NCBI GenBank assembly: GCA_964188305.1 | Contig: OZ076901.1 | DNA length: 64,000 nt | From: Podarcis bocagei | Taxonomy: Eukaryota | Reading direction: 5' to 3' (one strand) | In this document: piece by piece, positions 4,165 through 53,620 of the stretch | Layout of the letters: the number at the start of each line of letters is the position of its first letter | Position numbering within the stretch: the first letter of the stretch is position 1 | Position numbers and translations under genes: made by a program | The notes under the pieces: generated by a model | The model's database searches: none | What the model saw: the letters and a program-made list of their open reading frames with translations, nothing else | Told to the model about the DNA's origin: nothing

Positions 4165-4570
4165 AACATAGGAAGCTGCCTTAACACTGAGTCAGAACGT
4201 TGCTCCATCTAACTCAGTACTGCCTACACTGGCTGGCAGTGGCTCACCATTGTTTCAGATCAGGGATCCCTTCTCCAAGCCCTGCCTGGGGACGCTGCCA
4301 GAATTTGAACCTGGGACCTTCTGCATGTAAAACTGATGCTTTACCACTGAGCTATGGCCCACCCCTTAAAAATGAATCAAGATGCTAGCCCTCATGGTGC
4401 TGAACTAAGGGCACACAGGAAGCTGCCTTATTAGTCCATCTGGCTCAGGACACTGGCTGGCAGCAGCTCTCCAGGATTTTAGGCAGGGAGCCTTGCCCAG
4501 CCCTACCTGAGGATGCCATTGGCGATTGACACCTTCTGCATGCAAGGCATATGTCCTGCCACTCAGCTCA
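4165..4570 (-). mobile_element. Tandem pair of tRNA-Ala-derived SINEs
   Basis: Head GGGCCATAGCTCAGTGG...TTCAA.T.C.GGCA (tRNA-Ala-UGC-like), body GCTGCCAG.CAGTGTAG, tail AAGGCAGCTTCCTATGTTC; two units plus linker. Confidence 0.75.
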
Positions 4571-4730
4571 TGATAGGCAATGGGGAGAAAGGCTCTGATA
4601 AGCCCCCCATGTACACGGCTTGTCCACAGATAGACAGCAGACTGAGTAGGACATAGAAAGAGGGGGCCGTGGCACATTTGAGCTCTGCATCCATACTAAC
4701 CACATGAAAACACTTGTTGCTCAAGTGTTT

Positions 4731-5078
4731 CTCAACGGCCTTGGTCCAGTATATCTGAAGAAGCGTCTCCACCCCCATCGTTCTACCCGGACACTGAGGT
4801 CCAGCACCAAGGGCCTTCTGGCAGTTCCCTCACTGCGAGAAGCCAAGTTACAGGGAACCAGGCAGAGGGCCTTCTCGGTAGTGGCGCCTTCCCTGTGGAA
4901 CACCCTCCCACCAGATGTCAAAGAGAACAACAACTACCAGGCTTTTAGAAGACATCTGAAGGCAGCTCTGTTTCGGGAAGTTTTTAATGTTTGATGTATT
5001 ATAGTATTTTAATATTCTTTTGGAAGCCGCCCAGAGTGGCTGGGGAAGGTATAAATAAATTGGGCAGGGTATAAATAA

Positions 5079-5133
<55 letters not shown>
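4731..5133 (+). mobile_element. L2-clade LINE, 5'-truncated 3' end
   Basis: LNGLGPVYLKKRL...RAFSVVAPSLWNTLPPDVKE...FRRHLKAALF; GCCGCCCAGAGTGGC 3' UTR; (TTA)n tail. Confidence 0.85.
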
Positions 5134-5134
<1 letters not shown>

Positions 5135-5389
5135 GGCAATAGCAATGCTGAGCCCCCAGGTTCAGATGAAGTCTATCTCAGGAGACCAAGAGATGATGAA
5201 GAATGCCATGGGGAGGGCATTTGCACTCCTGTCCTGCTCAGGGGCATCCCAGAGCCACCCAGATGGCCACACAGCTGGGCCTAGGTGGGCCTTAGGCCTT
5301 AGGCTCCCAGAAGGCCTCTCCAGATGTCCTTACGAAGTAAGATAGTTAAGAGTGGAGCCTCCATAGGCAGAATCAGCAGCAGGCCCTTT

Positions 5390-5770
5390 GAATATTTTAT
5401 TTATTCATTAAATCTGTATGTCACCCTTAATCAGAAGACCTCAGGACTGCTCACAACATAAAAAATACAAAATGAAAACACAAAATACAGAATAAAACCA
5501 AGTTCAAAAACAACTCCCACAAACACATTTAAAGGGTCACAGATTGTTTAATAGGTCAAAACCAGCACTTTGAATTGGGCCTGGAAACTAATTGGCAGCC
5601 AGTATAATTAGGCCAGGATCGGTGTAATATTCTCAAACTGTCTTGCACCGGTGAGCAACCTGGCTGCCAAATTGTGCACCAACTGATGTTTCTGAACCTT
5701 CTTCAGAAGCAGCCCTACACTTAACACTTTGCAGTAATCTAATTTAAAGGCTATCAGAGTACGACTGGGG
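5390..5770 (-). mobile_element. Older L2-clade LINE fragment
   Basis: KLDYC...QLVHNLAARLLTGARQFENITPILA, typical of L2 ORF2. Confidence 0.7.
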
Positions 5771-5824
5771 GACAGACAACCAGGGAGGGCCACTGCCGTT
5801 TATGTCCTGCCCTCACACCTGGGA

Positions 5825-5989
5825 AGGGCTGTAGCACAGTGGTAGAGCATTTGCCTTGCCTTGGGTTCAATCCCAGGCATTTCCAGGTAGGCCCCTCCGC
5901 TGAAATCCTGGAGAGTTGCTGCCAGTCAGTGTAGACAATCTTTAGCTAGAAGGACCAAATGGTCTGTGTCAGAATAAGGCAGCTTCCTG

Positions 5990-6042
<53 letters not shown>

Positions 6043-6250
6043 CCAGCCCTTTATTCAGAGCAATGAGGACTAGGATCTTTAATTTTAGGGAGTCACAGCT
6101 CAGTGGTGGAATACCTGCCTTACATGCCGAAAGTCACAGGTTTAACCTCCAGGCAGAGAGGCTCGTCCTCTGAAACTCTGGAGAGCAGTTGCTGCCAGTC
6201 AGTGTAGACAGTACTGAGCCAGATGGTCTGACTCAGCAGAAGGCTCCTTG
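5825..6250 (+). mobile_element. Tandem pair of tRNA-Ala-derived SINEs
   Basis: Same family; units separated by (ATT)n and the ATGAGGACTAG linker. Confidence 0.75.
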
Positions 6251-6951
6251 TGAGTTTGCCAAATGCATCCTGAAAAGTAGAGGATGCTGGACGGACCATC
6301 TTTGTTTAAGAGATTGTTTCTGCAGTTAAGATTTAGTTTTTGGAGATGCAATCTTGTTGCTGTTACCTGGATCATGCTGCTGCATTTCAGTGATCAGCAA
6401 ATATATTTTATTGCACATTCATGAATAGAAGTAGAAGTTCACATCAGCTTATTGCAGCCATTTAAAGTCTGTGGTGTCTTGTAACCGTGAGAGAACTGCG
6501 TAAACCTTTGGATGGTGCAAACCGCCTTGAGCAGGGCTTACTAAGGATCAAATGTAAGAGTACGTTGAAGGCAGACCTTTGGTCTGCTCCAGCAGCCAGG
6601 CTCTTCCGAAGGATCATTGGAAGGCGGGTCAGCATTTCTGTCCCCTTTCAGGTTGAGAAAAGCAGCAGAGCCACTAAGAAGTCTTTCCTGACTCCCTGTT
6701 ATTTTGTTACAAGTCAGGAGCGTGTGATGTTTTTGCCACCTGTGTCCATTTGATTACCGAAAGCAGCCCCAGAGGACCATTACATACTCCACGGTTTCGC
6801 AAAGATAACTGATTCTCCGCCGCGGAAGCACACACCAAGGCCATCTCCCCGATTAGCAGCAACAACAAAAACAGGCTTATAAACTGAAGTCATAACCCCG
6901 TTTACCTGGGAGTGAGTCCATGCAAAATAAGTGTGTGTGTGTGTGTGTGTG

Positions 6952-7336: not shown

Positions 7337-7868
7337 ACTGGACGACTGATACCTTTTATGCAAAGCAGAACCCAGCTTTTCCCACGGTGGAGGTTTTTTA
7401 AAAACCGTGCACAGCTGTGGAAGTGGGTTCAGGTTGCAAGGGAGGGTTTAATGGGAGATCTAGAATCAAGGGTGGGGGAAGATTTAAAAAAGGGGGGAAG
7501 TTGGCTAGCCAGGGGTTGACCTAGAAAGGGGTGTGTGAGTGAAAGCAGTGTAGACCTAGGTAAAAGCACCACACACACATGGACATCTAAGGTTTCTCAT
7601 TTGTAATGTAAACATGAGCCAGCTGTGTGCTACTGCAGCAAATAAAGCCAATACAATCCTAACCTGGAGATTTCGGGGATTGAACCAGGCCAGGACCTTC
7701 TGCATGCAAAGCAGATGCTCTGTACACCTTACCCATGTGCACAGGGGTCCTTTTTAAAGGTGTTACAGAATTATTATTTTAGAAATCTGCCCGTGCATCC
7801 ATACATGGACCTCAAGGCTGATGGCTTGGAGAATTTACTTTCTAGTGCTAGATTTATTCATTTAGTTC

Positions 7869-10444: not shown

Positions 10445-10778
10445 TCCAGTATATCTGGAAGAGCGTCTCCACTCCCATCGTTCTACCCGGACGCTGAGGT
10501 CCAGTGCCGAGGGCCTTCTGGCAGTTCCCTCGCTGCGAGAAGCCAAGTTACAGGGAACCAGGCAGAGGGCCTTCTCGGTAGTGGCGCCCGCCCTGTGGAA
10601 CGCCCTCCCATCAGATGTCAAAGAGAACAACAACCACCAGACTTTGAGAAGACATCTGAAGGCAGCCCTGTTTAGGGAAGTTTTTAATATTTAATGCTGT
10701 ATTGTTTTTAACACTCGATTGGGAGCTGCCCAGAGTGGCTGGGGAAACGCAGCCAGATGGGCGGGGTATAAATAATAA
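10445..10778 (+). mobile_element. L2-clade LINE 3' end
   Basis: Same family as the 4731 copy. Confidence 0.85.
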
Positions 10779-12539: not shown

Positions 12540-14086
12540 TAATTGATTGCCAAGCAAATAAAGCTGAATGCACATAAATGTGTGCAAGCTGTGAGGTACC
12601 TGTACTTATTTAGGCTCTTGTGCTCAGCTTCTGCTTGCAGGTTTCCCATAATAGGCATCTGGTTGATACCTGTGGGAACAGGACTAGATGAGCCCTTGGT
12701 CCGATCCAGCAGAGCTTTCCTTAACGTTTTTATGGCCAAGGGACAGAAGGCAGATTCCTCTTTAAATCAACCTTTTTTTCCAGAACCATGAGGACTAGGA
12801 TCTTAGGGAAATGGCCACAGGGCACCTGCTTGGCATGCAGAAGGTTCCAGCTTCAATCCCTGCAATCTCCAAGTAGGATGGGGGGAAACTCCTGCCTGAA
12901 TCCATGGAGAGCCGCTGCCAGTCAGGGGTGGGAGGACTTTTCTGGCCAAAGGGCAACCTTCTGGAAGCTGCATGGCAGGAAAGGGTTAGGCTAAAGGTAA
13001 AGGAAAATGAACACAGCGATGGATAGAATCATATAATTGTAGAGTTGTAGCGTCCACATGAGGACTGAGCTAAGATACAGCAATGAACTGGCTTGGTAGA
13101 AGGTCATTTCCTGTGTTCTGGGATGTTTTGGGGAAGTTCTGATCATTCCTGCTGTAAACATCTGGATTCTACACATTCCATAGAATCAATTATCAGAATA
13201 TTTGGAGATTTATTAATCCACTGGCCTAGCAATGGAGTCAGCATTTACTTTTCACTGGGGATCAGGAGGCCGGATCCTTCGCGAGAGATCATGCAAGGAA
13301 ACAGCATTCACACATCCATTCCAGGGAGAAAATAAATTGAGGCAGCCAAACTGTCTTTATTTTCTCATTTCTACAGACTCTAGATTGGTGTCTGGGAATT
13401 CTGGGGGGAAGGAAGGGGGGGTCTCCTTTATTTTTGGATGAAAATATCTCTGTCTTCCATTTCTTTTCTGCAAGAGATTGTATCGTATTTTTGTCTTTAT
13501 ACTTCTTGGCATGATGACAAATAAACAGAAAAGTTACCATGCATGGTCAAAACCTGGGCTGGACTCAAGTCTGTTGAAACAGTCCCTTCCAGATCGTGAA
13601 GCGGGAGGTACCAGTTAAATAAAAGCCCTTGCCAGAGGTCTCTTAAAAATGAAATACCCATTGCTCGCTGCACCCAGCCTCATTTTCTACTCCTGACTGC
13701 TGAGATGTTGTGGAATTCAGGACTTCGTAAGAGGCTGCCTGCTGTCTCTCTCCAGGAGTCTCCGCTCTGAGTCAGGCAATACACCTGTGTTGACCCCAGC
13801 CCTGTGTGTTTCAGAGGTGAGCTCCTGCGGGGATGGCCAGCCCTGCTCTAACCAACACAAATGGGGAGGTTTAATGCAGGTGCAATTCAGGAAAATAATA
13901 ATAAATTAGGTCTTGCCTATCTGAAGTTTGGGGAACAGCAATCTGGTTAAAGCGACATTGCAGCTGCAAAGAAACCCTGTAAACTGCAGCCCTTAAAAAT
14001 GCTTCTTTGCCTGAGCAGCTTCTCTCCTCCAATGGGTGCACCTTGTGGAAACTTGTCGGCATCTCAGTGCAAACCTCTCCCAATAT

Positions 14087-15370: not shown

Positions 15371-15898
15371 AATCCCGCTTTGCAGCAACGCCCGCCACCA
15401 CCTCCCCAAAAGCAGGTTCCCTCCGGAGGCCTTTTCTTCCCCCGAGTGGATCTGCTGCAACTCTCTTCCTATCCGGCTCTCCCTGCCAAATGGAAGCGAG
15501 TTCACGGCAACAGCCAAGCTTGCATTATCGCAGCAAAGCAAATTAAAAATAAAATCAAACACAACCCGCCTTTCCCCCCTCGTCATCATCTCCCGAGCGC
15601 CGGCTGTAAGCCAGTTTACACAATCAGCAAAATTGATCTGTAAAGTGTGGGAGGAGGGGGGCTGAGAGCATCTGTTCCGCTTGCAGAAAGCGCCAGGTTC
15701 AACCCGCCCCTGTGACATATCTCCAGATGTGGCCAGGAATGTCTCTTGCTTGAATCCCCAGAGAGCTGCTGCTGCTGCTACTGCCAGTAAGTGTGGAAAC
15801 ACTGAGCTGTCTGGATCACAGGTCAGAATCTGTATAAGGCATATGCTTACATTTCAACCCTTTTTCAGAGCCATGAGGACTAACATCTTGGTTTATTT

Positions 15899-16675
15899 AT
15901 TTTTTTAAATAAATATTTTGTTAAGTTTTCACAATAAGAAACAAAGAAAATACAAAATCACAAAAAACAATACAATACAAAAATACAAACATTAAACACA
16001 TCAAAAGAAAAAGAAAAAAGACATAAAAAACATAGAAAAAAAGGTTCACTTTCTTAAATGTTATTTCCATCACCCTCTTTCTTGACTCCCTCACATCTCC
16101 CTTTTCTGTGTTCCCATTTACAAAATCTTATTCAGCAATATTTCACCTTTTTTCAAGTCTTATTTTATATTATACACTTCAACTATTATGTCTCCAATTT
16201 TTCCCCTTTATTATCTATTTATTTATTTAAGCTTGACATAATATTGTTCAAATTTTACCTTTGTTCTTATAAACCAATTTTGCATGCTCCTTTCAAGTAT
16301 ATCACTAATGCCACGTTATCTTTATAACCTGCATCATTCTAACATTCATACAGTTTACAATGCTTTTGCAAATAATCCTTAAATTTCTTCCAGTCCTCTT
16401 CCACTGTCTCTTCCCCCAGGTCTCGAATTCTGCCAGTCATTTCTGCCAATTCCATGTAGTCAATCAGTTGCGTCTGCCATTCTTCCAACGTGGGCAAATC
16501 TTCTGTCTTCCAGTACTTTGCGATAAGTATTCTTGCTGCTGTTGTCGCATACATAAAGTTCTGTCCTTCTTTGGCACCATTTGGCCGGCAATGCTCAAAA
16601 GGAAGGCCTCTGGTTTCTTAAGGAAGGTATATTTAAATACCTTTTTTAGTTCATTATAGATCATTTCCCAGAAGG
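15899..16675 (-). mobile_element. L1-clade LINE 3' end with TSD
   Basis: YATTAARILIAKYWK...PTLEEWQ...; A-rich tail; 17-bp TSD AACATCTTGGTTTATTT at 15882-15898 and 16676-16692. Confidence 0.88.
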
Positions 16676-17111
16676 AACATCTTGGTTTATTTTAAGGGGA
16701 GCAACCAGAGCTGTTTGGTGCAGCCGCCTCCTTTGCATGCAGGAGGTCCCAAATTCAATCCCCTAGTGGCATCTCAAGTTAGGGCTGTGAACGCAGCACT
16801 AAATGTCACCCCAGAAAGCCCCCAGCCAACACTTTGGGGTGCTACACTGCTTCAGCATATTCTGGGTTCGTAGAGGGATTTTTGCCTTCTCAGCTCGTGA
16901 CTTTATGGGCCAGTGGACAAGACCCGCAGCACGGATCTTTACAGCTAAGGCAAAATTCGTGTTTCCATCTCTGCTTGCCTGGTGGGAGACGTGCTAACTG
17001 GCTTGTCCAATTAGATTAAGGCTTTGGGTACAGAAGCGAGAAAACATAACTCCTCTTAGATGGAAGGGGGGTAGGAACCACGAACAAGCACATTCCTTGA
17101 AAAGCTTACAG

Positions 17112-17361: not shown

Positions 17362-19357
17362 GTTTACAGAGAATTGTCTCAGCAGAGAAGAGCCCCAGAA
17401 CCTATTTGAAAGGCCACAAACGTATTTGCAGACCTGAAGGGAGAGGAGGCACAGACACTATTCTAATCCATTAACTTTGCAGTGAAAAGCTTGATCTGTA
17501 GGACTCATGACATAGCTGATTGAAACCATGATGAATTTGGGAATACCTTCACTGTTGGAGGCTGGATGCCCCCGAATACGTCTGCTGGGAGTCACAGACA
17601 GAGAGAGTGTCGCTGTGGTGCTCAGAGGTCCTGCCTGTGCAATTCCCTTTGGGGCACTGCTTGGTCACTATAAGAAGCTGGACTACATGGGCCTCCTCTG
17701 GCCTGATCCAGCTGTGGGCTCTTCTTATGGAAACTCCAGGTCCAAAGGCAGTCTATCTTGGTTCTTAGGTTCTTAGGTGAATTTGATCACCGTAAGAAGA
17801 TGTCGCTGGTTCAGAGGGGCTTCCTTTGACCCAATTCAGCTGAAGAGCTCTTCTCATTAATTAGTCACAGGCAACTTTTTACCATTGGTGTACTTTTAAC
17901 ATACAATTAAGGTAATAAGAGATACCTTTTCCATTATATTAAAGGCTCAAGGGTGTTTTTTAAAGAAACCATGTTAAGGAATGACAAAATAATCATACAA
18001 GAGAGAGAAGCAGGAGCAGCAAACCCAACCCAATTCTGTAGCCAACCTGCAAACCATGTAACAACCACCAGGCATTATATAAGCAACACACCCTCTCAAT
18101 TCATTTGGAGACATTAAAATTAACAGGTTAAAATGTCTTCAGGAAACAAATGTCTGCACAGTGGCAGAAAACCATCGGTGAAGGAGTGATCTGGCCTTCC
18201 TTGGCCAGAAGATCCAAAGTTGTCATTATCTTATGAACATGAGGACTAGAAACTTGGATTTTAAACACAAACAAATCCCCACCCCCTCCTCCAATTGCTA
18301 AGAGATTCTTAAGATTCAAAGCACAGAGGCTGCGTCCTGGGAGGTTGTTCCAATTCTTTCCATGCGTTTGACCTGCTTTTGACTCTCGGCCACGAGAGGT
18401 TCCCCTGTGGCTGAAGTCAGCCTGGGAGGTGGGATTTGGGGAGCAAGTCCAAAGTGAAGCACGAGAGAAGGATTGGACAAGACAGGATGTAATCCCAAGG
18501 AGACCCTCACCCCCCACCCTCCTTGGCTGGACAGCCAACACACCTGAGACCAGCCAGGCAGGTGCAAAGTGAGATCAGAGCAGCTGCAGATGCCAGCTTC
18601 TTCCACCTTCTATATTATTAATAAATACAACAACCCGATGGGTCCCCATGAATAATAGATCCCGAAAGGAAGATGATTTCCCCTTCGCAGGAGTACATTT
18701 CCATCAAAAAGGGCTAAGGCAGATTCATCCATTTCTTTACACACATACTCGCCTCCCCCTTCATTTTGCTTAATTGCCTTTGTGTCTTATTTTAGATCTA
18801 GAACCAGCTTGCAATTATTTGACCCAAGAAGAACTGAGGGGGGAAAGAGGGGATTCAAACAGAAGAACTGTGGAAACAGGGAGATTAAGGAGAAGACCTT
18901 GAGGACACAGCAAGGCTTGTGGATTATTATTATTATTATCAATTTTCTTCCATCTGAAGATCAGAGGGCAGTTTGCAATAGAAAAGCACCAAAATACGTT
19001 ATCAGTGTGATTGCCAGTTGCTTGGGTCTTGCTTGTGGGATTTCCTGTGGGGCGCGTGGTTAGCCCCTGTGAGAACAGGATGCTGGGAACTAGATGGGCT
19101 ACTGGCCTGATCCAGCAGGCTCTTTTCTGATTTTCTTATGCTTTTCAGGAGTTTAAGGAAAAAGTAGGCGGAGGTATGACTGCAAATATAGCCCCTCCCC
19201 CTGCCAACAGCACAGAGGGGACCTTTTCTGCAGTGGCCTGAGACAGAGCCGTTGGTTCGTACCTGAAAGGTAGTTCTGTGTTGCAGCATCATTGTGTCGT
19301 TGACACCGATGAACCATGCTTCCATACGCCCCTTTGTTTTCAGATAATACATGGGTA

Positions 19358-29136: not shown

Positions 29137-31230
29137 AGGAAGCTGCCTTATACTGAGCCAGACCATTGGCCTATCCCACCCAGGGTTGTCTGCACTGGCT
29201 GGCAGCACCTCTCCATGCTTTCAGGCAGGGAGTCTTTCCCGCCAGCCCTACCTGGAGATGCCGCTGGGGTTTGAACCCGGGCCCTACAGGGATGGGGAGG
29301 CTTCACTTTGCTGAATCCTGCTCTCTTTTATTTCTTGAGGTTTGCTTCATTTCGGAAGTGTTTAGCCGTGTTAAGATGCGGCCTTTAAGTTGGGGCAAAC
29401 CCCAAGGCAGGTGTATAGGAGGTTGTTGGGTTTTTGTAAGTGTTTTTAAAAATGGGAATCTCTGTATACGCAGCACGGCAGATTGGTGTTTGTTTCCACA
29501 GCTACCCAGGCCCAAGGGGAAAGAGAGGCAACCCGCCGGCACTTCTGGGAGCCCTCTTCTGAAGATCAGGCGAGCAGGGGACGGAGGCAGGAAAACAAAG
29601 AAGCAGAAAGTCTTCTCCTTCTGTGGTATGGCAAAGAAAGGGATTCAAAAGGGGACCCTCAAAGCTGGAGGAGCTGCCAGCAAATGCGCAGGAAGCAGAA
29701 GCAAAAGGGGTGAAAATGAAAATGGGAGACAGGAAGGAAGTTCTGCAACGCAGGGAGCAAGAGGGAGAAAGAGAGGTTTGCCATGCTGCTCCGTAACAGT
29801 GGAAAGCGCATTTCCTGGGTGGATTTGTTGCTAAGAGAGTATCAGGTCCAAAAAGCTGCCTCATCCCAAGTCAGACTCATTCGTCCATCTAGCTCAGTAT
29901 TGTCTACACTTGACTTAAAGAGGCTCTCCAGTGTTTCAGGCAGAGGATCTTTCCGGTCCTGCTCAAAGGCGATCGAATCTGGGGCCTTCCGTGTGCAAAG
30001 CAGATGCTCTATGCTGCTGAGCTATGGTCCTTCAAATGCAAAAGGAGAGCTTTATGTGTTCCACCTAGCACTGTCTGCACTGACTGGCAGTGTCTGCCCA
30101 GGGTTTCAGGCCTGGTCTCCCCAGCCTTAGCTGGGTGTTTCTGCATGCAAGGCAGCTGCTCAGCCACGGAGCTATGGCCCGACTTAGAAAGTCAGAGAAA
30201 CTTTGCACTGCCGTGAAATAAAGAACCATAATTGGCTTTACGTAATTGGTGAATGACAGCAAGTGATTTATGCGATTGGCTAATGAAAACCTCCACTCAG
30301 ACAATAACACGTCCCGGCCTAAGTGTCCGCCTTCTTTACGTAAGAGCACCAGAAGAGCTTGGCTGCTGGATCAGACCATGCAACTGCATGCTCCCTGTTT
30401 ATGAGTCGCAGACTGAGATACAGCAGAATACTGCCTCTGGCAGAGAGGGAGCGCAGCCATCATAGTCAGTAGCCATTCATAGCCTGATCCACCATGAATT
30501 CCCCCCCAAACCCCCTTTTAAAACTGTCCAACCTGCTTGTCATCACCTCTTGTGGCAGTGAGTTCCACAGTTTACCCATGCACTATGTGACCAAGTCCTT
30601 CCTTCGTCTCCCTTGAATCTCCCAGCATTCAGTTTCAATGGGTGACTTTCTGGGGTTCTAGTACTGTGAGGGGGGAGGGAGGAATTCTCCCTACCTACTT
30701 TCTCTGTGGAGGAAAAAATTATTCAGCTTCCCTAAGTATCTTTTCGACCTGAGCAGTAAAGGAACCCACCTCATAAGGTTTTCCTTTCACGAGAAATCCA
30801 GAGCATTACCTTTTTTGCCTCTCAGTTTGTACTCTGAGAATACAAATAATAAAGGTTTGTTCTGCTGGCCAACATGGATTTGCGGCAGCCCACCTAATGG
30901 AATATTCAAAAAGCCCCAGAACTGAGCACAGTTCTTGCCAGGGAGACGTGGTGTGACATTTCTGTATTTATAGGTAAAACATAAACATTCATCAAGGTGA
31001 GAGCATATGACTAGACTAAATTATTTGCATCCCTAAAGAAGAAAATTCACTGCTTCTGACTTTTGCAGATGGAGTATAGAATCACAGGAAGCTGCCTTAT
31101 ACTGAGTGAAATTACTGGGTCCATCTAGCTCAGAGTTGTCTACACTGGCTGGCAGCAGCTCTCCAGGCAGGAGATAGTTTAAACTTGGCAGATGCTGGGG
31201 ACTGAACCTGGAAAGATATGGCCCTTTTCC
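29137..31230 (-). mobile_element. Scattered tRNA-Ala-derived SINE copies (about 29137-29290, 29855-30180, 31085-31230) plus a CR1-type fragment (about 30345-30700)
   Basis: Recurring GGAAGCTGCCTTATACTGAG...CTAGCTCAG...CTGGCAGCAGCTCTCC motif. Confidence 0.7.
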
Positions 31231-33130: not shown

Positions 33131-34004
33131 ACTGAGGGCAACTGGGGCACTGCCCCACCAAGGTGATTCTTCTTGCCTTCAGCCAGCCCCACACCGGACT
33201 GCCTCTTTACTCAAACCAGCCCCCTGGGGCTGACCTTGCCCACCAGCTCCCTCCTCTTCCTCCTCTGTGTTGCCCCTTGTTACCTCTGGCCCAGCCCATT
33301 GCTGGCATCCCTGCCTTCCGTCCCACCAGTCTCAATGGCACCAGTCACTGCTGAATATGACTAGGGGCTGGGGAGAGAGTTGAACCACTCGGGCTGTTGC
33401 CCAGAGCTAACAGAATTCTCTCACTAGGTCACTCTGCTAAATGCCACACCCTGGTACATCCTTCTTCAATTTTCAGAAGGAGGTTTAATGTAATCTGAAG
33501 AGCTGAGAGAGATCATCCCCCCCAACCCCAATTTTCTCAGGGTTTGCAGCTAAACAAACGGAGCCACAACGAAGAGTGCCCCTCCCCTCAAAAATCCCCC
33601 AGCAGTCATAAAACTCTGGAGGAGGCAGCAAGGAGCCTTTCTTGATGATGGCGCACAGGAATTTCTGCTTCATTTAGGTGGTGCATGGAGCGTAGCCGGT
33701 CATTCGTTTTACTTCATTTCAGGGAAAGCTGACATAACAAAGGGGAAGGGAGGAAGGAGGGAGGGAGGGGAGAATGAGGACATGGTTTTGCAAGAGAAAG
33801 CACTTCCAAAACTGCTCTTTTCCATGGAGTTGGCAATGCAAGAGAAAAGTGAGGGAGGGAAGGAAGGAAGGGGAAATTTTTGTTTAGGATGCTGGAGCTG
33901 AATTTCACATGTGCAAAAATTTAAAATTAAATTTATCTCACTAGGACAGATTAAGGGGTCATCTCCCCCAAATTCCTGCAAGCCAACAGATCTCAGAGGA
34001 ACAG

Positions 34005-34862
34005 GTGAAGCTTCCTCATACAGTCAGCTCATCGGTCCTTCTAAGCCCAGTGGTGTCCACCCTGAAAGGGAACGGCTCCTCAAGGTTTCAGGAAGGGAGT
34101 CTTAACAAGCTCTACCTGTCAGGGATTGAACCCAGGAGGTTCTGTGTCCACAGCACACAGCACAGTCAACCACTGAACTGTGGGTCTTGCACTAAAAGCA
34201 AAACAAAGTTCAAATCCTCATGGTTCTAAATTAATGGCTGCCTTATACTAAGCCAGACCTTCAGCATATCTAAGCTCAGTATTGTCCGCGTTGACTGGCA
34301 GCAGTTCTCCAGGACCTCAGACAACATTCCCAGCTCTACCTCTGCAAAGCAGGGTCTGTGTACCACTAAACTATGCTCCTTTCCCTAAAAATAAGCTAAG
34401 ATTCCAGTCCTCATGATTCTAAAGAAAGGGATGGTTTAAACAGGGACACAGGAAGCTGCCTTATCCTGCGTCAGATCACTGGCCCATGTAGCTCAGTACA
34501 GTGGTATCTCTGGATGCGAACGGGATCCGTTCCAGAGCCCCATTCGCATCCTGAACGCAACCCATGTCCGTGCGTCTGCATGTGTCACGATTTGCCGCTT
34601 CCGTGCATGCGCGTGACGTCATTTTGAGCGTCTGCGCATGCATGAGTGGCGAAACCTGGAAGTAACGCGTTCTGTTACTTCTGGGTTGCCGCGAAGTGCA
34701 ACCCGAAAAGGCTTAACCTGAAGCGACTTCAACCCGAGGTATGACCGTCTTGTCTACACAGACTGGCAGCAGCTCTGTAGGATTTCTGGCGTTCCAGATG
34801 CCATCAGGGACTGAACCTGAGACCTTCGCCATGCCAAGTTCTTACCACTGAGCTATGGCCCT
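34005..34862 (-). mobile_element. Three tandem tRNA-Ala-derived SINE units, one interrupted by a MITE
   Basis: Three head-to-tail units with linkers at about 34195-34235 and 34395-34440. Confidence 0.7.
34499..34747. mobile_element. Tc1/mariner MITE nested in a SINE
   Basis: TA-CAGTGGTATCTC...GAGGTATGACCG; splits GCTCAGTA|TTGTCTACAC of the host SINE. Confidence 0.75.
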
Positions 34863-35540
34863 TCTCTAAGGGCTCTGTCGCAAATCTCCTCGGGACCTGT
34901 GGAAGACCCCTGGGGCAGATCTCCAATCTCCTCCTGCTCTCCACTCCCCAGATTACCACCCGCCTTAAGCAGATGATGGAAATACACCAGGAAGCCAGCC
35001 ACGCTCCAGTCACCCAAGCAGCCGTAACTCAACGCCGCTCAGGCTCTGCATTGCCTCACGTGCTCCCACTGGGTGATGACAGACAAGGAGCTAATTAAGA
35101 GACGGGCGAATTCCTAGTGGGTACAATTCCCTCAAGCAACAGCAGCAGCAGCCGCGCTACCACCAATTAATCAGATACACAAATGTTTGCAATTACAGTG
35201 AAGAAAACTGGGGGGCGGGGGGAGGGAGAGAAGAGAACGAAAACATGGGCTTTGTTCTCACAGGGTGTTTTGCAGAAGCCACACCTGAAACGAGGACATG
35301 AAAGTTTCCCTCCCTCTCTCTCATCCAATGAAGCTGAATGTTGGAAAATTCAGGACAGGTTAAAAAAAAAGCCCTTCTTCACGGAGCATGGAGTTAAACT
35401 GTGGAACTCACTGCCACAGGAGGCAGTGATGGCCATGAAAGACGACTGCACAAATTCACAGAGGGAGAGGGCTATCAATGGCTATGAGCTACGATGGCTA
35501 TGCACTGCCTTCACAATTGGAGGCAGCCATGCTGCTATAT

Positions 35541-36747: not shown

Positions 36748-37265
36748 GTGAATAGATTTCTATACACACAATCAGAGCAGCTTACGATTAAAGAAGGAAA
36801 GCAGAATGGCTTTTTTTGAATGTCACAGTAAACCATGGAATAGAGAACCAAATGCGGCCCCCCAGGCCTCTCTATCTGGCCCTTGGGACTCTCCCCCAAG
36901 GCCACACCTCCTCAGCAGCCCTACTTTGCAGCCTCCTGGAGTGTGTTTTTTGCCCGGTTGAAATGTCAGTGTGGACAATACTGAGCTAGACAAGGCAGCT
37001 TCCTGTGTTCCTGAATTAAACCTACACGATTTTCAGGAATGCAACTGGTGAGGACTTAAACACAAGAATGTCCCTCAAATCAGCTGAATTAAAAAATGAA
37101 ACGAAAAAACCTTGTCAGTCATCAACACTGTTCGGCGTCAAATAAGCAGCCTGCAACTTTTCTCACTGCTGCTAGGTACAAAGGCGTTGCTATCAGGTGG
37201 GTCTACATTGCCCAAGAAACAGCTTAAATTCGCCCCTCTCCATCACATTTTTATGTTAAACAATA

Positions 37266-37595: not shown

Positions 37596-39350
37596 TAACT
37601 TCAACATAACATACATAATCTAGAGAAGCTTATTTGAGTGCTTCTGTTTGCCCAATAACAATCAAAAGTTACCTGTTGGTAGCAATAACATGTTTCTAAC
37701 ACAAAGCTTACTAATAGCTCAACTGTCAAAAAATCCTTTCCATACACAAGTTTGGGATTTTGGAGGAAGAAATGGGTTCTGACCCCCATTGACTAATGAA
37801 CACTCTCTCTTCTATTTATCCCCCTGGCAGCTCTTCTGTGCTTTGTCAAACAGTCTGCAGGGGCCATCATCCACACAAGGCTGACCCAATCTATCAAAAT
37901 GTATCTCAGATTTTGTCTTCCAGTGTTCGAAGCGTCAAAAATCGCCTGCTTGGCCAGAAATGCTGGAAAAGCTACAAGGAATCTCCCCCTATGTGAGTTG
38001 CATGAATGGCAACGCAGGATACAGTGCACAATGTATTTGATATGGCCTGATTGCTACCACCATGGGAAGGGTTCAAGTTGTATGAATGTAAGGGCCTCCT
38101 GGATCAGGCCAAAGGGGGCTCATTTAGTCCAGGATCCAGATCTCAGTGGCCAACCAGGTGCCCCCAATGAGAAGCTCGCAAGCAGGACCCGGGTGCAACG
38201 TTTTCTTCCTCCCCAGACCCCAAACTCTGCAACTGCTTGCCTGCTGATTTCAGCCTGCTGCTGAGCTCCGAGGAAGAGCCCGCAAGCCCCCCCCCCAGCA
38301 GGATTCCGCCTCCAGCTTGCAGAGAAGGAGAGAGAGAGAGAATCTGCTCATTTGGTAAGTTTTACAAAAAGCTCCCCCTCGCTGCCGCCACCCCTCCCCA
38401 TCTCAGCGCACGGATTTCCACATTTAGCAGAACGCTTCCCTAAGGCAACATAACTTTTTGCAGAGTCCCCCCCCTCCCTTCCCACCTGCCCCATATTTTC
38501 TCAAAATATATTTAAACCCCTTGCAGGGAGCAGATGCCAAAGCAAGATGCCCACATTTTATCTAATTTAAGGAGTGGAATGGAGGAGTGGGGAGGGGGGA
38601 GAAAGCCAACAGATTCCTACTTTGGCACGCATGGCACCCCTGAGTAATATCATGGAAGCGCATGGAAAAGGGGTCGCAAAATAATAATCATACAGAAAAT
38701 AAATCAAGGATGGCACGATACAGAAAAGAGAACGTTGCCTCTTTGTATGAGTTACTGTTCTGAAGGTGTCTCCCCAATACAGAAACATAGGAAGTTAGGG
38801 TCCAACCATGTGAAGACCCACTGAAATCACTGGTCGTGACTAATACAGGTCCATTTATTTCAGTGGGTCTACTCTGGTGCAACCCAGGTGTTCATCTGAG
38901 GAGGGGAAATTCTCCACATGCTTTGGAACAAAACCAGCTTGGCTGAAAGTGGTGAAGTGTGTCTCTGGTTTTAGTTTAGATAACAAAGGGTGCGTCTAAG
39001 CCTGTTGGGAATTTCAGCAACACTCCTCTGGACACTCAAGGGTTAAAGCCCCTGCTTCGCATGCAGAAGGTCTCCTGAAAGCCTCTCCAGCTAAAATGAA
39101 GATTAGGCGACCTTCCTCTGTTTGGAACCCCAGAGAGCTGCTGCCAGTCAGTGTAGACAACACACAGCTAGCTGGACGCAGCGTAAGAGGTAGCTGAGTG
39201 GAAGAGCACCTACTTTGCATGAAGAAGGTAGGTATGTTTAAAGCACTCTGGTTACGCCACTTTAACAGTCATGGCTTCCCCCAAGGAATCCTGGGGACGG
39301 CGGTTCATTAAGCTCACAGCACCACAATTCCCAGGACTCAAAACAAACGA

Positions 39351-44804: not shown

Positions 44805-46849
44805 CTCTAAGCCGGCCTACTCAAGCTGGTGCCTTCCAGATGTTTGGGAGTTGTAGTCCAAAACATCTGGCGGGCACCAGATTTCATTTATTTATTCATT
44901 CATTGAATTTATATACCGCCCTAAACCCAGAGGTCTCAGGGCGGGTCACAGAATAAAATCAAAATATAAAGCCACAAAATACATAATAAAAATAACAACA
45001 ACAACCCAATAACCCCCCAAAAACACAGTTTAAAAGGGCTGTGCTTTTGGGGGGGAGTGTTATAAGCATCTCCACTGGTCTTCCAAAGTGACAGCTCTGT
45101 TTTACAGCGGCTCAGCACTCCCTCTTCATCCTCTGCGCATGGGAAGTTTATTGCATTTAAGCTGCGACTCCTGCACTGCAGAGGGTTGGACTAGATGACG
45201 CTTTGGGTGTCCCTTGCAACTCTACACGATTCCCTGTGTGTAAGAAGAAGGGGGAGGCTATGCACTCTCCTTGGGGGTGGGGAGGTGGGCCCAGGCTAGC
45301 CTATCTGCCTGCTCCCTGGCGCTGCCAAAGCCAGGATCCTTCCTCCCTCCTCCCTGGAAGGCCAGTTCCTGGAGAGACTGACCCTCCCATGTAATTGCAG
45401 CAGATTCCCCCAGGAACCGGGATAAATGAACTTAAAAACAAAACTGGGCGGGCATTAATGTAAGTCATTACCACCAACCACATCTGTCAGAACAAATTCC
45501 GGTAATTCACTAATGGACTATGCAAAGCTTCCCTCTCTCTCTCTCCCCCACTCTTACCCATTTCAGCTTTTTCACAGCCTTGCAAAGCTCTGAGCCAGAG
45601 AAATCTGCTGGAAAGGAACCACCGTTGAGGAGCTCTATAGGGACACCCACCCACATAAAAAAATAGATTTGTAATTAAGAATAATTCAAAGGAAACGGGG
45701 CGGGGGGAGGCACTGAGGCCTTCGTTAAGACAAACTAAGAAGAGAGAAAGGTTTAAAGGAGGCTTAAAAAAAGGAAAATATTCTTATCAGAATGAATGTT
45801 AATCAAAAGAAGGCATGGGGAGGCGTTAAGGATGCTATCGTGAGAATGATGGGAAAATGTCAGCCTGCCATTAGGAATGAGAGATATTCTGCGCAAATAG
45901 ACACAATTTTGCCCTCTGCTTTTAATTAAAATATAAATATGCATGTATAGAGATAGAGGCATTGACACACACACACACAGCCTAAACCTCATAGGGGCAG
46001 TAATAATAATAGCAATAATTAAATTTATTGCCCGCCATTCACCAGCAGGCCCCAGGATGGGTTACAAAAATCTAAATGTAATTAACTTTTCATTAAAAAA
46101 ATAATTGGTATACTAATTCTGTGAAATAAAATTTAAGTTTAACTTGCAAAATAAATCTGCTAAGGTGCATCCAATAATATTCAAACAAGAATGTCAACGC
46201 AGGCACAGATGCCTCAGTAACCAGCACATACCCAGAGCCCAGAAGAAGTTGGACTCATCCATTATGCCGCACCAGCAGAAATAAACACTGAAAACAGCCT
46301 TTCCAGAGCATTTCACCTAAGTCATGCCTCCTTCCAACCACTCCTTCCCTGCAGAATCAGATGCTTCCAAAACAAAACATCCTGCCTAAGGCAATTCTCA
46401 TCCTCCAGGGAGGGGGAGATCAGGTTTAGAAGCTCACTTAGAAAGGTGCTAAATGGCTGGCCTTTGCCCCTCCCTCACTGTGATTAGCAAAACAGGAACA
46501 AATTAAGCATCTCAGCAGAGTTATGCAAAACAAAGTAGGCGCATTTGCTCAATGACTAAGGATCTCAAAATCCAGCTTTTACTGATTTGCTTCTCTCTCT
46601 CTTTTTAAATTAAAGCATGGAGTAAACAACTATCTTCTAAGGATCGGAAACTTACTTTTTTCTCTTGTTTTGGTTGGGTTTTTTTAAAAAACAAACATGA
46701 AGGCACTGTCAGACTGACATCAGATTCCACGCTTGGGCAAGAGGCAGCAGAGGCAAGTGGTACATACATTTCAAGGGAGAATAGTAATAAGATCTGGATG
46801 CTGGAACTTTTTTTTTAAATAGCCAAGAGCCATCCTCACCAGGGGAAGG

Positions 46850-47420
46850 AACATAGGAAGCCTACCTTATTGGTCCACCAGGCTCAGGACTGTCTGAACT
46901 GACTGAAAATAAACAAAGATTCTAGTCCTCATGGCTCTGAATAAAGGACTGAAATAGGAACCCAGGAAGCCCCCTAAGGGTTCTGAATTAAGGACTGATT
47001 TAAACAGGCAGTTGTCCTACGCTGAGTCGGCCCTCGGGTCCATCTAGCTCAGTATTGTCAGCATTAACTGGGAGCTCTCCAGAATCTGAAACAGGGTTCT
47101 GCCCCAGCCCTACCTTGAGATGCCGTTGGGGATTCAACTTGGAACCTTCTGCATGCAAAGGTGATGTTCTGCCACTGTGCTGCAGCCCTTTCCCTAGAAT
47201 CATGATGCTAGTCCTCATGATTCGAAATAAAGAGGTGGTTTAAAGAGGAGCAGAGGAAGCTGTTTTCTGCTGAGTCAAACCACTGGGCCATCTAGCTCAG
47301 TACTGCCTTCCCTGGCTGGCAGCAGATCGCCAGGGTTTCAAGGAGGGACATTCCGAGCCCTACTTGGAGATGCTGTTGGGGACTGAACCCAGAACGCCCT
47401 GCATGCAAAGGGAGAGTTCC
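46850..47420 (-). mobile_element. Tandem array of tRNA-Ala-derived SINE units
   Basis: Two near-complete units plus partial units; linkers at about 46915-46960 and 47195-47250. Confidence 0.7.
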
Positions 47421-48431
47421 CCGACATCCAGCTGCGAATCCTTTCCTCCGTGCAGGGAGTGAGCACCGTGACCTCACCACACCGCAAGCAGAACGTTCCT
47501 AAAGACACAAGTCATCCTGCCAAAGCTTCAAGGAACATTCGCCTTATTGCACCCTTTCCAAGTTACAAAAAGCAAAGCAAGAAAGAAATTCAATGGGGAA
47601 GCAGCTGGAGAAGAATGTGTGTGTTCTGCAGTTCCAACAGCAGCCCTTCTTGCTTTCCTACACTTAATTTATTTTTTATATAGAAGAGTTTATTTTGGTT
47701 CAAGCCACCGGAGCATCAAAAATAGCAAAGCACCAGGGTGATTCAAAACTCTGCACAGAGAGAGAGCGAGAGAGAGAGAGAAGGGGAGAGAGAGAAGGGG
47801 GGGGGGGAGAAAGAGAAGCACCTTGGCCATCTGGGAGAGAACAGGCAGGATAGGACGGCAGCTTCATTTAGTGATCTTCCTAGTTGAGCGAGCGATTTAG
47901 AAGTGCCAAACTGGACTTCTTTTATCAGAGCTCTTAAAAGCTACATTGCAATCTGGCAAGTGGAGACTCCTCATCCAGTGGGAGCCCTTTGCAGACTCTG
48001 CAGGCAGGACCGAGGGTGGGTGGGTTGGAGGCAGAAATGCCATAAGGATAAAGGAATTTGGGGCAAAGTGCAGCCAGACTCCTGTGCATGGGAGGTGCCG
48101 GTGAAACCTACACTCTGTTTATTTACGTATTCCATAAAATTTAGAGCCCATTGGCAGAATACCTGATCTGCATGAAGATGATCCTGGGTTCAAACTTAGG
48201 AAGGGTCGAGGGCAATCTCTGACACCCCGAGTCACTGCCAGCTAGTGTGGGCAAAGCTAAGTTTGATGGAACAATGGTCTGTCTCGGTAGAAGGTGCTGC
48301 CTCCTCAGCTCCAAGCTTGCACACCTCCCTCTGTCAACACCAGGGTTCCAGTAACTAATGAACAAGGTGTACCCTGTAAGGCTGAGGTCTGCCACACCTG
48401 GTCTAAACAATGCGCATTTGCTGTGGGTTTA

Positions 48432-49917: not shown

Positions 49918-50275
49918 TATATAGGCCGGGAGAGAAAACAGTTCTATGAGTTCTTGTGTTCTAGTATATACACAGAAAACTGCTGCATGAGTTCTTGTGT
50001 TCTGATATACAAAGCAGTGACCATTCTGCATGCGCCCAATTAATGTGTGACTGCTAACATGCACACCACTTTTGGCCCCGGAAGGTGGCGGAATGGGCTG
50101 GCATTTGCAATGACCAGGAACGCAACCCATATGCAAACAGGGAGTTGCCAGCATATATAAAGAGAAAACTGGTGCATGAGTTACTGTGCGTGCATGAGAG
50201 CTCTCTCTCTTTCTATATATATATATATATGTAAAACTGCTGTACTAGCTCTTGTGCTCTGATTTATATATATAT

Positions 50276-50288
50276 AAATCTACGAAAG

Positions 50289-50350
<62 letters not shown>

Positions 50351-50618
50351 CTTTCGTAGATTTTCACGGGTACAGGAATGCAGGTTTTGGTATCTTCGGG
50401 TGTCTTCCCGTGTAAGTTCCTCTCTGCCCAGAACGTTGGAGGCTATACACCACACCCCCTCAACAGTATTTATAGGAACTCAAACACTGAGATCCTGCTC
50501 TGTTCTAGTAACAAGAAGCCGAAAGCACCAGCCTGAAGATGACGAGTGAGACCTCGTTAAAAACGTCGCCTAGACACCCCAACTCTTACACGGGAAGACA
50601 CCCGAAGATACCAAAACC

Positions 50619-50655
<37 letters not shown>
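50276..50655. mobile_element. Penelope-like remnant with inverted repeats, embedded in (TA)n
   Basis: Perfect 39-bp inverted repeat (50378-50416 / 50585-50623), degenerate CTGAAGA...AAACGTC hammerhead-like core at 50531-50570, TA tracts on both sides. Confidence 0.6.
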
Positions 50656-50657
<2 letters not shown>

Positions 50658-51782
50658 TAAATCCCTTGCCAGGGAAAACAGATGAAAGAAATGCACGTAC
50701 AGACATAAAAGACCGGCTGTTATCTGTACTAATGATGCTGAAGCAAGCCCACTCTCTCTACCGCATCTGCCTTTCATGCTGGTTATTTATAAATACCAAC
50801 AACAATAGTAATGATAATAATAAGGAAGCCCAGGAGAGCTCCTTTGCCCCTTGGAGCATCGAGCGCACGCACTCACAGGCACGCAGAAAAACCCTAATTA
50901 AGCTGTTCAAGGACCTGCCTGGCTCCGTTATGTAACTGTGCTCCTCCATCACAGCCATTGTTTCCATAAATGGGAACTCTGAGGGGGGAGACGGGGAGTG
51001 GGGGGTGGCCCCACCGGTCAATATAGCAGGGCATCTGCCAGGGGCCCCCACCCCACCAAGGGGTCTCACACTGGACTTTCTCCTCATACTTCACCAGTCT
51101 GCTACCCTTCACAACAGTGGTGGAGAGGAGAAGAATCAGTAGACGTCACTTCCTGCTGGTTCCTGTACGCAATGGGCATGGATGGCTAAAAAAACCCTCA
51201 CTATACCAATGCATATTCCACATGGCCACTGCCCAGGAAAGCTAAACCCTGGAAGAAGCCCTCAAGGACCAGCAGTCCTGATGGGGCACCTGTGCTGCTT
51301 GTGGAGAACCAGGTCCCTACGTTATCCCACTGCTTGCCTCTGCTGCCTTACTGGGCCAGCCTCCCCAGACCAGCTTCCTGCTTCCAGTGGTGGGCCATGC
51401 TTCTAAGCCATGCTCTGCTTGACGGCCATTGACCTGTGACAGGGCCTTTTCAGTGGTGGCTCCCTGTTTGTAGAATGCCCTCCCTTGACTCGCCTTTACT
51501 CTAAGAGACACCAATGCCCAAATGTTGCAAGATAAAAAGATAAGAAGATCAGGCCAATGGCCCGTCTAGTCCAACATTTTGTTTCCACAGCGGCCCGCCA
51601 GATAGCTATGAAAATGTTTTAAATGTTTGATGTTTTACTGTGCTTTTCATATTTTGCTGGGAGCCACCCACAGTGGCTGAGGCAACCCAGTCTTATGGGT
51701 GGCATATAAAAAGTAAAATAAAATAGTAATAATAATAATAATAATAGTAATAATAATAGTTGTTATTTACCCTCCATGTATA

Positions 51783-52146
51783 GGGGTGCGGGTGGCGCTG
51801 TGGGTTAAACCACAGAGCCTAGGACTTGCCAATCAGAAGGTTGGCGGTTCGAATCCCCACAACAGGGTGAGCTCCCGTTGCTCGGTCCCTGCTCCTGCCA
51901 ACCTAGCAGTTCGAAAGCACGTCAAAGTGCAAGTAGATAAATAGGTACCGCTCCAGCGGGAAGGTAAATGGCGTTTCCGTGCGCTGCTCTGGTTCGCCAG
52001 AAGCAGCTTAGTCATGCTGGCCACATGACCCGGAAGCTGTCTGCAGACAAATGCCAGCTCCCTTGGCCAGTAAAGTGAGATGAGCGCTGCAACCCCAGAG
52101 TCGGCCATGACTGGACCTAACAGTCAGGGGTCCCTTTACCTTTACC
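51783..52146 (+). mobile_element. Sauria SINE, full length
   Basis: 16-bp TSD TTACCCTCCATGTATA at 51767-51782 and 52147-52162. Confidence 0.9.
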
Positions 52147-53229
52147 TTACCCTCCATGTATAAGTCCAATCCTCTTTTAGAGCCATCCAAATTGGCTTCT
52201 TTCATAGGGGAGTTGCTCCACGCCCCCCTGAACACATTGGGCTGCCCTTTTCTGAACCTTTTCCATGTAGGGGGAGCAGAACTGCAGGCATTCAGGGAAG
52301 GCCACATAGCAAGGCCTGACGCCAAGAGCTTCCACCCTTCAGAGGTAAACCAGGTCTTCATGGAGAGAAGGCAGGCTTTAACCACCCTTGGTATTCTATA
52401 CTGCCCCCCAGAAAAAAAAACACTTTACACATACAAATGAATTCCTTCAGTGCTGATTTAGGAAATTACTCCCCCCCCCCCCGCCAAAGCCATTAAGCTT
52501 CAGAAGCTCTCAGGGCTACACTCTCCAAACACACACACACACAGAAGTGAGTGCTGAGCTGACAAACTCATTTCCTCTTAGCCCAGCACTTTGCAGGATG
52601 AAGCAGCTGAAGCCTGTCCATTCATCACCCAGCCCTGTGCCTCCATTTGATGGAAAGCCTCGCCCGCTACAGGAGGGAAGGCCGTGGGGGGGGGGGGAGG
52701 AGAACCACACAAATGGATGAATTATTTACTCTGCTCGCCTAAAAGGGTATTAAGCTGGGGAAAGTGGGGCAGGGAAAGGGAGAGGTGCTTTGCAGAGCTG
52801 GTCATCAAGGAAACCCAGCAGGCTGCTACACTTATTACTCATACGCAGGATGGGCAGAGGAGCATCTCTGCCTGGGCATCCCTAATGCAAACAAACATTC
52901 GGATTCCAACTCAACTGTGGAAGGGGCTGCCTCAAAAGGGGGTGGGTGGACTCTCCTTCAGCAGAGGTTTCCAAACAGGGGTTGGACGGTCATCTGTCAG
53001 GGATGCTCTGCTAGATTCCTGCACTGCAGGGGGTTGGACTGGACGACTCCCGGGGGTCCCTCCCAATGCCACAATTTCTGGGGTTTACGCCACCTTCACT
53101 GGTGACCTGTTTGTTTCAGAGAGCAGTCTGGAGCGCCAGGTGTAATGCTTAAGGCTCTAACTTGGCCTTACTTAACTGGGTGCCATCCAGATGTTCTGGA
53201 CTATGGCTCCCACCAGCCCAAGGCAGCAT

Positions 53230-53620
53230 GCCAAGCCACTGGCCCCTCTAGCTCAATACTGTCAACACTGACCGGCAGCAGCTCTCCTGGGATTCAGGCA
53301 GGAGCCTTTCCCCAGCCCTACTGGAGACACCCCTGGGGATTGAACCCGGGACTTTCTGCATGCAAAGGAGATGCTTTGGTCCTTCCCGTAACACAGAGAA
53401 AGACCCCAGTCTTCATGGTTTTGAACTAAAGGCTAATTTAAATAGGAACATTGGAAGCTGCCTGAAACGAAGTCGGTCCGTTGGCCCATCTAGCTCAGCA
53501 AGGACTACACTGGCCGGCAGCAGCTCTTCAGGGATTCAAGCAGGAGTCTCTCTCCCAGCCTTACCTGGGCATGCTAGGGATTGAACCTGGGACCTTCTGC
53601 ATGCAAAGCAGATGTTCTGC
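53230..53620 (-). mobile_element. Tandem pair of tRNA-Ala-derived SINEs
   Basis: Two units with linker at about 53385-53450. Confidence 0.7.

Follow-up and report, generated by a model that had tools for sequence, protein, structure and literature searches.

Squam2 is a squamate-restricted short interspersed element (SINE) of about 195-205 nt (Grechko et al., 2011). It has a tRNA-Ala head with the A and B boxes of RNA polymerase III (Pol III), a body, and a tail with a hairpin and octamer like those of the long interspersed element (LINE) CR1. The published consensus (Vassetzky et al., 2023; Additional file 6 of PMC10702118) is a monomer of about 205 nt which stops at the CR1-like tail and has no spacer. 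Tandem SINEs are known from other groups, and their origin, whether by insertion into tails or from joined templates, is still stated as open (PMC8466645). Template switching from the RNA of a lizard L2-dependent SINE to another Pol III RNA (U6) has been documented in Anolis (PMC4476161). Here we describe a stretch of 64,000 nt from the lacertid lizard Podarcis bocagei (contig OZ076901.1 of assembly GCA_964188305.1), referred to below as the window, which represents the TRARG1-GOSR1 region. In contrast with the published monomer, almost every full-length Squam2 unit in the window belongs to a dimer or trimer in which the units are joined by a fixed extra spacer.

Squam2 units and the spacer that joins them

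Iterated nhmmer profiles built from the window identify about 24 old Squam2 units. Each is about 20% diverged from the consensus, and in a comparison of the window with itself the copies are 62-70% identical to one another, so the family is old. The units are laid out as a tRNA-like head, a body and a hairpin-plus-octamer tail, and at many sites the tail is followed by a further ~55 nt and then by another head. There is no tRNA in the raw window according to ARAGORN, but at a relaxed threshold the same program reads positions 5-74 of the window unit consensus as tRNA-Ala(tgc). Rfam gives a tRNA match of 34.2 bits at 4298-4354, to a head in array A, and in the consensus the motifs of the Pol III A and B boxes can be made out. 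This confirms the tRNA-Ala SINE head proposed in a preliminary description of the window that was made from the letters of the DNA. The window unit consensus (~190-205 nt) follows the published Squam2 consensus in head, body and tail, as compared by reading and not with an aligner. On the strength of this likeness and of the tRNA matches the units are assigned to Squam2, and the spacer lies outside the described monomer.

Nine loci in the window are head-to-tail dimers or trimers of Squam2, and multimers with a spacer make up nine of the ten loci that hold a full-length unit. There are at least 11 same-orientation neighbours, whereas random placement of 24 units would give 0.39. The loci are dispersed, their flanks are unrelated, and the units at each are placed in head-to-tail order. 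They comprise six dimers (A, B, E/F, H, L and M), a trimer (J), a trimer-like array (K) and locus D, which consists of 15 nt of a left unit, a spacer and a unit; the solitary units are C, G, I, O and N (Table 1). H and M are tandems with eroded junctions and had not been listed previously. The T-rich nucleotides at the junction of H are read as a reduced spacer, a reading with no scored match.

The same 55-59 nt spacer is found at eleven Squam2 junctions. The 12-mer CATGAGGACTAG, taken from the preliminary description, occurs 11 times in the window with one mismatch or fewer, against an expectation of 0.30. A profile of the whole spacer gives strong matches on both strands at the spacer positions in Table 1, and the well-preserved internal junctions each score 40-54 bits; it also detects a half copy of the spacer within array K. 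Head-to-tail multimers joined by a shared linker had been claimed previously, and with nine multimer loci and 11 junctions that carry the spacer this claim is borne out; the profile is strong at each of the spacer loci that had been named. Two of these loci proved to be larger than described. The junction reported at 15856-15892 is real and belongs to a dimer (E/F) whose second head, at 16693-16791, now lies beyond a nested insertion that is flanked by an exact target duplication of 17 bp. The spacers reported at 34195-34235 and 34395-34440 are also real and are those of a full trimer (J), the first unit of which is split by an insertion of ~247 bp.

The spacer is strictly internal to the arrays. 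The spacer profile matched none of 14 first or solitary units within 70 nt upstream and none of 15 last or solitary units within 75 nt downstream, and nowhere in the sample did it find a solitary unit with a spacer. Away from Squam2 units it found nothing except one ancient match to the core only; there were no free-standing copies and no LINE ends. This does not agree with the alternative that the spacer is an independent repeat which serves as an insertion target. Possible remnants of the spacer seen by eye upstream of A1, J0, L1 and N and downstream of O were dropped because they have no profile match.

The ends of the spacer and of the arrays are well defined. In the window and in the copies from Lacerta and Rhineura, the spacer ends 3' in a run of four to seven T residues (T4-T7) followed by A, and the GGG of the next head comes immediately afterwards. 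The model position at which an array begins lies between 3 and 22, and where the start is clear GGGAAGGG adjoins unrelated flank; the arrays end at model positions ~192-207, which is the canonical CR1-like tail. About nine arrays start at the head start and about nine end at the canonical tail. Column conservation is 0.80 in the spacer, 0.78 in the head, 0.79 in the body and 0.80 in the tail region, and the spacer is as old as the units. A conserved fold of the linker was looked for and not found (-0.28 kcal/mol, no covarying pair). Two metagenome scans for the spacer gave no matches and 13 matches, respectively; the 13 share the searched 19-mer only, with no Squam2, and are due to chance.

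Two units are no closer in sequence if they belong to the same array than if they come from different arrays (identity 0.673 versus 0.668), which argues that there was no local duplication of DNA. There are no diagnostic sites that separate left from right (non-terminal from terminal) units, the best of 736 tests having p=0.007. First and last units (0.794 against 0.789) show no overall age difference, and neither do first and later units. The least diverged unit is A1 (0.86-0.88, against 0.81 for A2). The data suggest that, in the lineage from which lacertids and amphisbaenians descend, Squam2 spread chiefly in dimeric and trimeric form, the units being complete and equivalent and separated by one fixed spacer.

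Table 1. Squam2 arrays, solitary Squam2 units and a spacer-like core in the window
Feature	Position	Strand	Description
Array A, dimer	4163..4580	-	Unit A1 ~4389-4580, spacer 4367-4412, unit A2 4163-4361; from nhmmer unit and spacer profiles
Array B, dimer	5822..6260	+	Spacer 6042-6086; (ATT)16 at 5991-6039 between tail of unit 1 and spacer, a microsatellite grown there
Array D	12744..13118	+	Last ~15 nt of left unit, spacer 12757-12806, complete unit split by 134 bp of foreign DNA (12930-13063)
Array E/F, dimer	15660..16791	+	Spacer match 15855-15898; split inside spacer by nested A-tailed insertion ~15899-16675; target duplication 15882-15898 / 16676-16692
Array H, dimer	29848..30185	-	Eroded junction; ~13 T-rich nt in place of spacer
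Array J, trimer	33996..34865	-	Spacers 34386-34444 and 34193-34247; first unit split by ~247-bp insertion (34503-34749)
Array M, two tandem units	39039..39229	+	Tail end, spacer and start of next head deleted; second unit cut on 3' side
Array K, trimer-like	46846..47444	-	Unit, spacer 47198-47248, unit, ~48-nt local duplication of tail end and first half of spacer (46979-47008), spacer 46905-46958, third unit from model position 126 only
Array L, dimer	53230..53624	-	Spacer 53390-53446; second unit cut at model position ~170
Solitary unit G, 5'-truncated	29124..29285	-	Model positions 46-203; without spacer
Solitary unit I, 5'-truncated	31076..31213	-	Model positions 49-200; without spacer
Solitary unit N, full-length	48142..48314	+	Sole full-length monomer in window; without spacer on either side
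Solitary tail fragment O	36965..37013	+	Model positions 128-199
Solitary head fragment C	7656..7722	-	Model positions 22-87
Spacer-like core	18212..18263	+	No adjoining Squam2 unit; ancient orthologous element, outside arrays

The insertion in E/F is a minus-strand, A-tailed, L1-like element, 5'-truncated and flanked by its exact 17-bp target duplication. It is absent from Lacerta agilis and is therefore younger than the split of the two lacertids. The insertion in the first unit of J (J0) is a CpG-rich foreign element, and the foreign DNA in unit D1 abuts a minus-strand Sauria tail at ~12985-13005. Units A1 (~4440) and K3 (~46870), which belong to different loci, have both lost the same 15 nt from the 3' arm of the tail hairpin, and units O and B2 have other deletions at the same spot. 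The deletion in A1 and K3 is either a subfamily marker or the mark of a deletion hotspot.

The family was at first read as Sauria/Squam1. This was rejected because the Sauria SINEs of the window form a separate, young family with an (ACCTTT)n tail, a Sauria/Squam1 feature (PMC13295347), and clear target duplications. There are copies with this tail and with target duplications of 13-14 bp at 21830-22232 (+), 51790-52150 (+) and 48430-48770 (-), and the first of these holds an internal 52-bp tandem duplication (21955-22061). In addition, a repeat of ~400 bp edged by (ATT)n/(AAT)n microsatellites occurs at 4731-5130, 10445-10784 and 14090-14626, and there are at least four copies of it in the Lacerta locus.

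The orthologous region in other squamates

TRARG1 exon 1 lies at 1159-1725 (+) and its closest relatives, at 98% identity, are those of the lacertids Lacerta agilis and Zootoca. The gene order BHLHA9 - TRARG1 - GOSR1 (convergent) is kept from geckos to lacertids. A search with the BHLHA9 protein for other lacertid loci returned orthologues of the same locus only. The orthologous region was taken from seven squamates: Lacerta agilis, the amphisbaenian Rhineura floridana, Elgaria, Sceloporus, Candoia, Tiliqua and Eublepharis.

Lacerta agilis has the arrays as in the window, and there is a further trimer just upstream of the point at which the window starts. Array A is a dimer in this species too, and array E/F is an uninterrupted unit-spacer-unit (L001 23715-24079). 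The region in Rhineura is collinear with the window. The dimer at B with its spacer (L002 13827-14168), a complete dimer at D with a full left unit (L002 17654-18004) and the upstream trimer are all orthologous to those of the lacertids, while the counterpart of E/F is masked by a Bov-B insertion. The complete dimer at D in Rhineura indicates that the left unit of the lacertid array was lost by deletion. At two unlinked loci of Rhineura there are two truncated Squam2 units only.

The picture from profile searches of the other five species is different. There is no Squam2 in ~28 kb of the orthologous region of Elgaria and Sceloporus, one short fragment in that of Candoia, and one spacer-less monomer each in those of Tiliqua and Eublepharis. 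Judged by profile absence rather than by empty sites at the nucleotide level, the spacer-linked arrays would have arisen after the lacertid-amphisbaenian lineage had left the other sampled squamates and before lacertids and amphisbaenians split. Arrays common to lacertids and Rhineura and absent from the five other squamates are candidate retroposon markers for a lacertid-amphisbaenian grouping.

Three spacer-like motifs without a SINE had been noted previously, at 40, 541 and 18240. The first two are weak matches to the core only (E>2) which lie outside any repeat, as does a similar match at 60017, and they do not stand as copies of the linker. The third is not a SINE junction either; it is an ancient element conserved in Rhineura and a snake. 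Its core of 26-34 nt (..CCATGAGGACTAGAAACTTG..) is at the orthologous place in the lacertid, in the amphisbaenian (L002 21717-21768) and in the boid snake Candoia (L007 26644-26681). The block around 18238 is collinear in Rhineura and Candoia, with a spacing of 367/368 nt to the next conserved patch. A spacer profile built without the element matches it over 26-34 nt with E values of 0.0097 in the window, 1.9e-4 in Rhineura and 4.8e-6 in Candoia, and Rfam has no match around it. The element is older than the burst of Squam2 arrays, and it could be a constrained element or the relic of an older repeat. Separately, the block at 16822-17000, directly downstream of unit F (Rhineura L002 20536-20689), is unusually conserved between lacertids and Rhineura with long invariant runs and is possibly a conserved non-coding element.

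Origin of the arrays

The Squam2 monomer lacks the spacer, which matches the units in age and is found only inside arrays. A homologous junction is present at about a dozen dispersed loci and the spacer never stands at the end of an array. It follows that the tail-spacer-head junction itself has been copied. A concatemer, as the preliminary description had proposed, is thus the most economical mobile or template unit, although the circular, rolling-circle and satellite forms that had been suggested for it are not upheld (see below).

With slightly better than even confidence, we infer that each array is the product of one retrotransposition event and that the spacer is a fossil Pol III 3' trailer with its terminator, joined to the 5' end of the next transcript through a template jump of the reverse transcriptase, through read-through of dimeric source genes, or through both. 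Reverse transcription by the partner LINE, of CR1/L2 type, would start in the last unit, at its CR1-like tail with hairpin and octamer, which would explain why this unit carries no spacer. The enzyme would then run to the Pol III start of the last unit and pass on to the next template segment, which it would enter at the 3' end. The spacer would be the 3' trailer of the source gene's Pol III transcript, down to the T-run terminator. It is read in this way because a T-run that abuts a transcript start is what is predicted if the 3' end of one RNA has been joined to the 5' end of another. The founding junction most likely came from an end-to-end template jump, a kind of event that is known for non-LTR reverse transcriptases, and later arrays may have come from read-through transcripts of dimeric source genes or from repeated jumps onto monomer RNAs that carry the trailer.

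The array ends, namely a transcript start and a LINE-like tail, fit target-primed reverse transcription from an internal recognition site in which downstream RNA is ignored. Kajikawa and Okada are said to have found such an internal start, with downstream RNA ignored, in the eel UnaL2 system in 2002. The 3' ends of another CR1-type family are present in the window at 12650-12720, 17700-17730 and 19060-19150 (..GGACTAGATGGGCC..CAGCAGGCTCTT..). They share the hairpin and octamer design of the Squam2 tail, which is consistent with a CR1-like partner.

Several observations count against this explanation. Read-through of dimeric source genes fits both the peak of the size distribution at two units and the uniform junctions, but the spacer contains a T5 run, which should stop Pol III, and a terminator inside the template is awkward for this route. 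Repeated jumps fit the terminator but predict many full-length monomers, and one is seen. The array sizes (about one full-length monomer, seven dimers and three trimers) are not the geometric series of independent jumps; by our own arithmetic the probability of one monomer or none under independent jumps is about 0.01-0.02. When the flanks of arrays A, B and D were read, no target site duplications could be recognised that would point directly to a single event per array; the copies are ~20% diverged, and the partner LINE type makes short target duplications or none. Locus A is a dimer in lacertids and a single unit with the same flanks in Rhineura. Finally, every count was made in a single gene-dense region of ~75 kb or in its orthologues.

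At positions 11 and 68 the single unit at locus A in Rhineura has derived states in common with A1, and at positions 92, 99, 138 and 191 it has them in common with A2. This fits the loss of a unit by unequal recombination, which would rest on six sites only (p about 0.07).

The explanation can be taken a step further, and here we are more tentative. In this one squamate lineage the normal retrotransposition product of a CR1/L2-dependent SINE may be an oligomer. Having copied one SINE RNA from the LINE-like tail inside it, the reverse transcriptase would make an end-to-end jump to another Pol III transcript of the family and begin to copy this at its extreme 3' end, so that trailer and terminator are fossilised as the spacer. 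If this were true, the internal units would be self-contained genes, with promoter and terminator, and the true source genes of the family.

A different explanation, which we consider unlikely, is that arrays grew stepwise, with single copies of unit plus spacer inserted exactly at the 5' end, where Pol III starts, of a Squam2 copy that was already in place and had a promoter. Insertion might be targeted to DNA to which Pol III is bound, or a read-through RNA might prime it through homology of its 3' end with the head of the older copy. It would account for locus A, where A1 is the upstream and least diverged unit of a dimer that is single in Rhineura, and for the position of the junctions exactly at the head start. 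Additionally, truncation at the 5' end has removed the A box of the promoter from nearly all solitary units (G, I and O), whereas full-length units almost always have an upstream neighbour. However, stepwise growth does not lead one to expect first and last units of the same age, and the absence of any solitary unit with a spacer from the sample means that targeting would need to be absolute. The Rhineura unit at locus A is A1-like in its 5' part and A2-like in its 3' part, as after unequal crossing-over. Moreover, we know of no vertebrate LINE that targets Pol III start sites.

It is very improbable that the spacer is the SINE's own LINE-derived 3' tail, or a repeat that attracts insertions, and that the tandems formed as monomers were inserted independently into the tails of earlier copies. 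Tandem SINEs of mammals usually do arise by insertion into tails (PMC9025800; PMC8466645), and by eye the core of the spacer is loosely like CR1-type 3' ends; we had at first read it as such a tail. That reading was rejected because the terminal Squam2 units are without the spacer, as is the published consensus, and the spacer profile finds neither free-standing copies nor LINE ends.

The least credible explanations are the circular and the DNA-level ones. If a monomer RNA had been circularised and reverse-transcribed by rolling circle, or if the template had been a circular RNA like that of a retrozyme, repeats in head-to-tail order would result, and RNA 3' end would be joined to RNA 5' end at a constant junction. 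The array ends, however, are not permuted: about nine arrays have their start no more than some 20 nt from that of the head, no array starts in the spacer or body, and by our arithmetic random stops on a 250-nt circle would give this with a probability far below 1e-6. Moreover, there is no ribozyme family in the window at Rfam gathering scores and the spacer has no conserved fold. Equally little speaks for tandem duplication of DNA, in which the SINE and its flank would form a satellite-like unit multiplied by segmental duplication or unequal exchange. It is true that squamates have satellites that stem from SINEs, among them a few short lacertid loci of Squam2 origin (PMC10702118), and that unequal exchange probably altered the copy number at locus A. 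However, units are as different within arrays as between them, there are two or three units per array at many loci with unrelated flanks and no flanking sequence seen to be shared between arrays, and the unit is a whole SINE with extra sequence, whereas all satellite units of SINE origin described so far fall short of the SINE in length.

Comparison with known systems

In the preliminary description the architecture of these arrays was not recognised from described families. The family itself is a described one, Squam2, and tandem SINE multimers and dimeric SINEs are known kinds of element; what is absent from the published monomer is the spacer. Multimeric spread, which the arrays suggest, would be unusual for Squam2, but the principle is not new. 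There is also a practical consequence, in that repeat libraries which hold only the Squam2 monomer leave the spacer unannotated and miscount the copies.

The satellites sSat2 of squamates (PMC10702118) and the PolIII/TAN-type repeats of amphibians resemble the arrays in that they are tandem, have a tRNA-like Pol III promoter and in some units contain extra sequence of unknown origin. They differ in that their arrays are long and homogenised, are built from partial SINE units and occupy few loci, often subtelomeric ones, whereas the arrays described here are dispersed, consist of two or three complete units and show no homogenisation. sSat2 is defined by at least four units, a unit shorter than the SINE and high similarity within a locus; here there are two or three units, each a whole SINE with its spacer, and similarity within an array is no higher than between arrays. 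Neither a ribozyme in each unit nor permuted copies, as in retrozymes and other circular RNAs, were found in the window.

The tandem multimers of rodents (B2-B2, B1-B2 and Dip; PMC8466645) are closer. There too a large share of the copies is head-to-tail, and the origin, by tail insertion or from dimeric templates, is unresolved. Their junctions are A-rich tails and are compatible with tail insertion. In contrast, the junction here is a conserved non-SINE spacer that terminal units do not have, and this argues against the tail-insertion route.

As in true dimeric (complex) SINEs such as Alu, Twin and B1-dID, most copies here consist of head-to-tail units joined by a constant short linker and copied together with it. 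The differences are that the units are equivalent, with no left and right differentiation, that two to three copies are joined, that the linker ends in a Pol III terminator, and that the partner is a stringent LINE of CR1/L2 type rather than L1. Since the spacer is absent from terminal units and carries a Pol III terminator, the origin of complex SINEs becomes testable for a LINE type that initiates internally.

The U6/LINE and U6/AnolisSINE2 chimeras (PMC4476161) also offer a close parallel. In these a single insertion event has placed an entire Pol III transcript, U-run included, upstream of a retroposon copy, and this has been shown for lizard L2-dependent SINEs. The Squam2 arrays have the layout of such a template-switch chimera, with T4-T7 at the spacer end and the junction at the head start, provided that the spacer is indeed a trailer. 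They would differ from the U6 chimeras in that the acceptor RNA is the same SINE with a fixed trailer, and in that the joined product is the rule and not a rare by-product.

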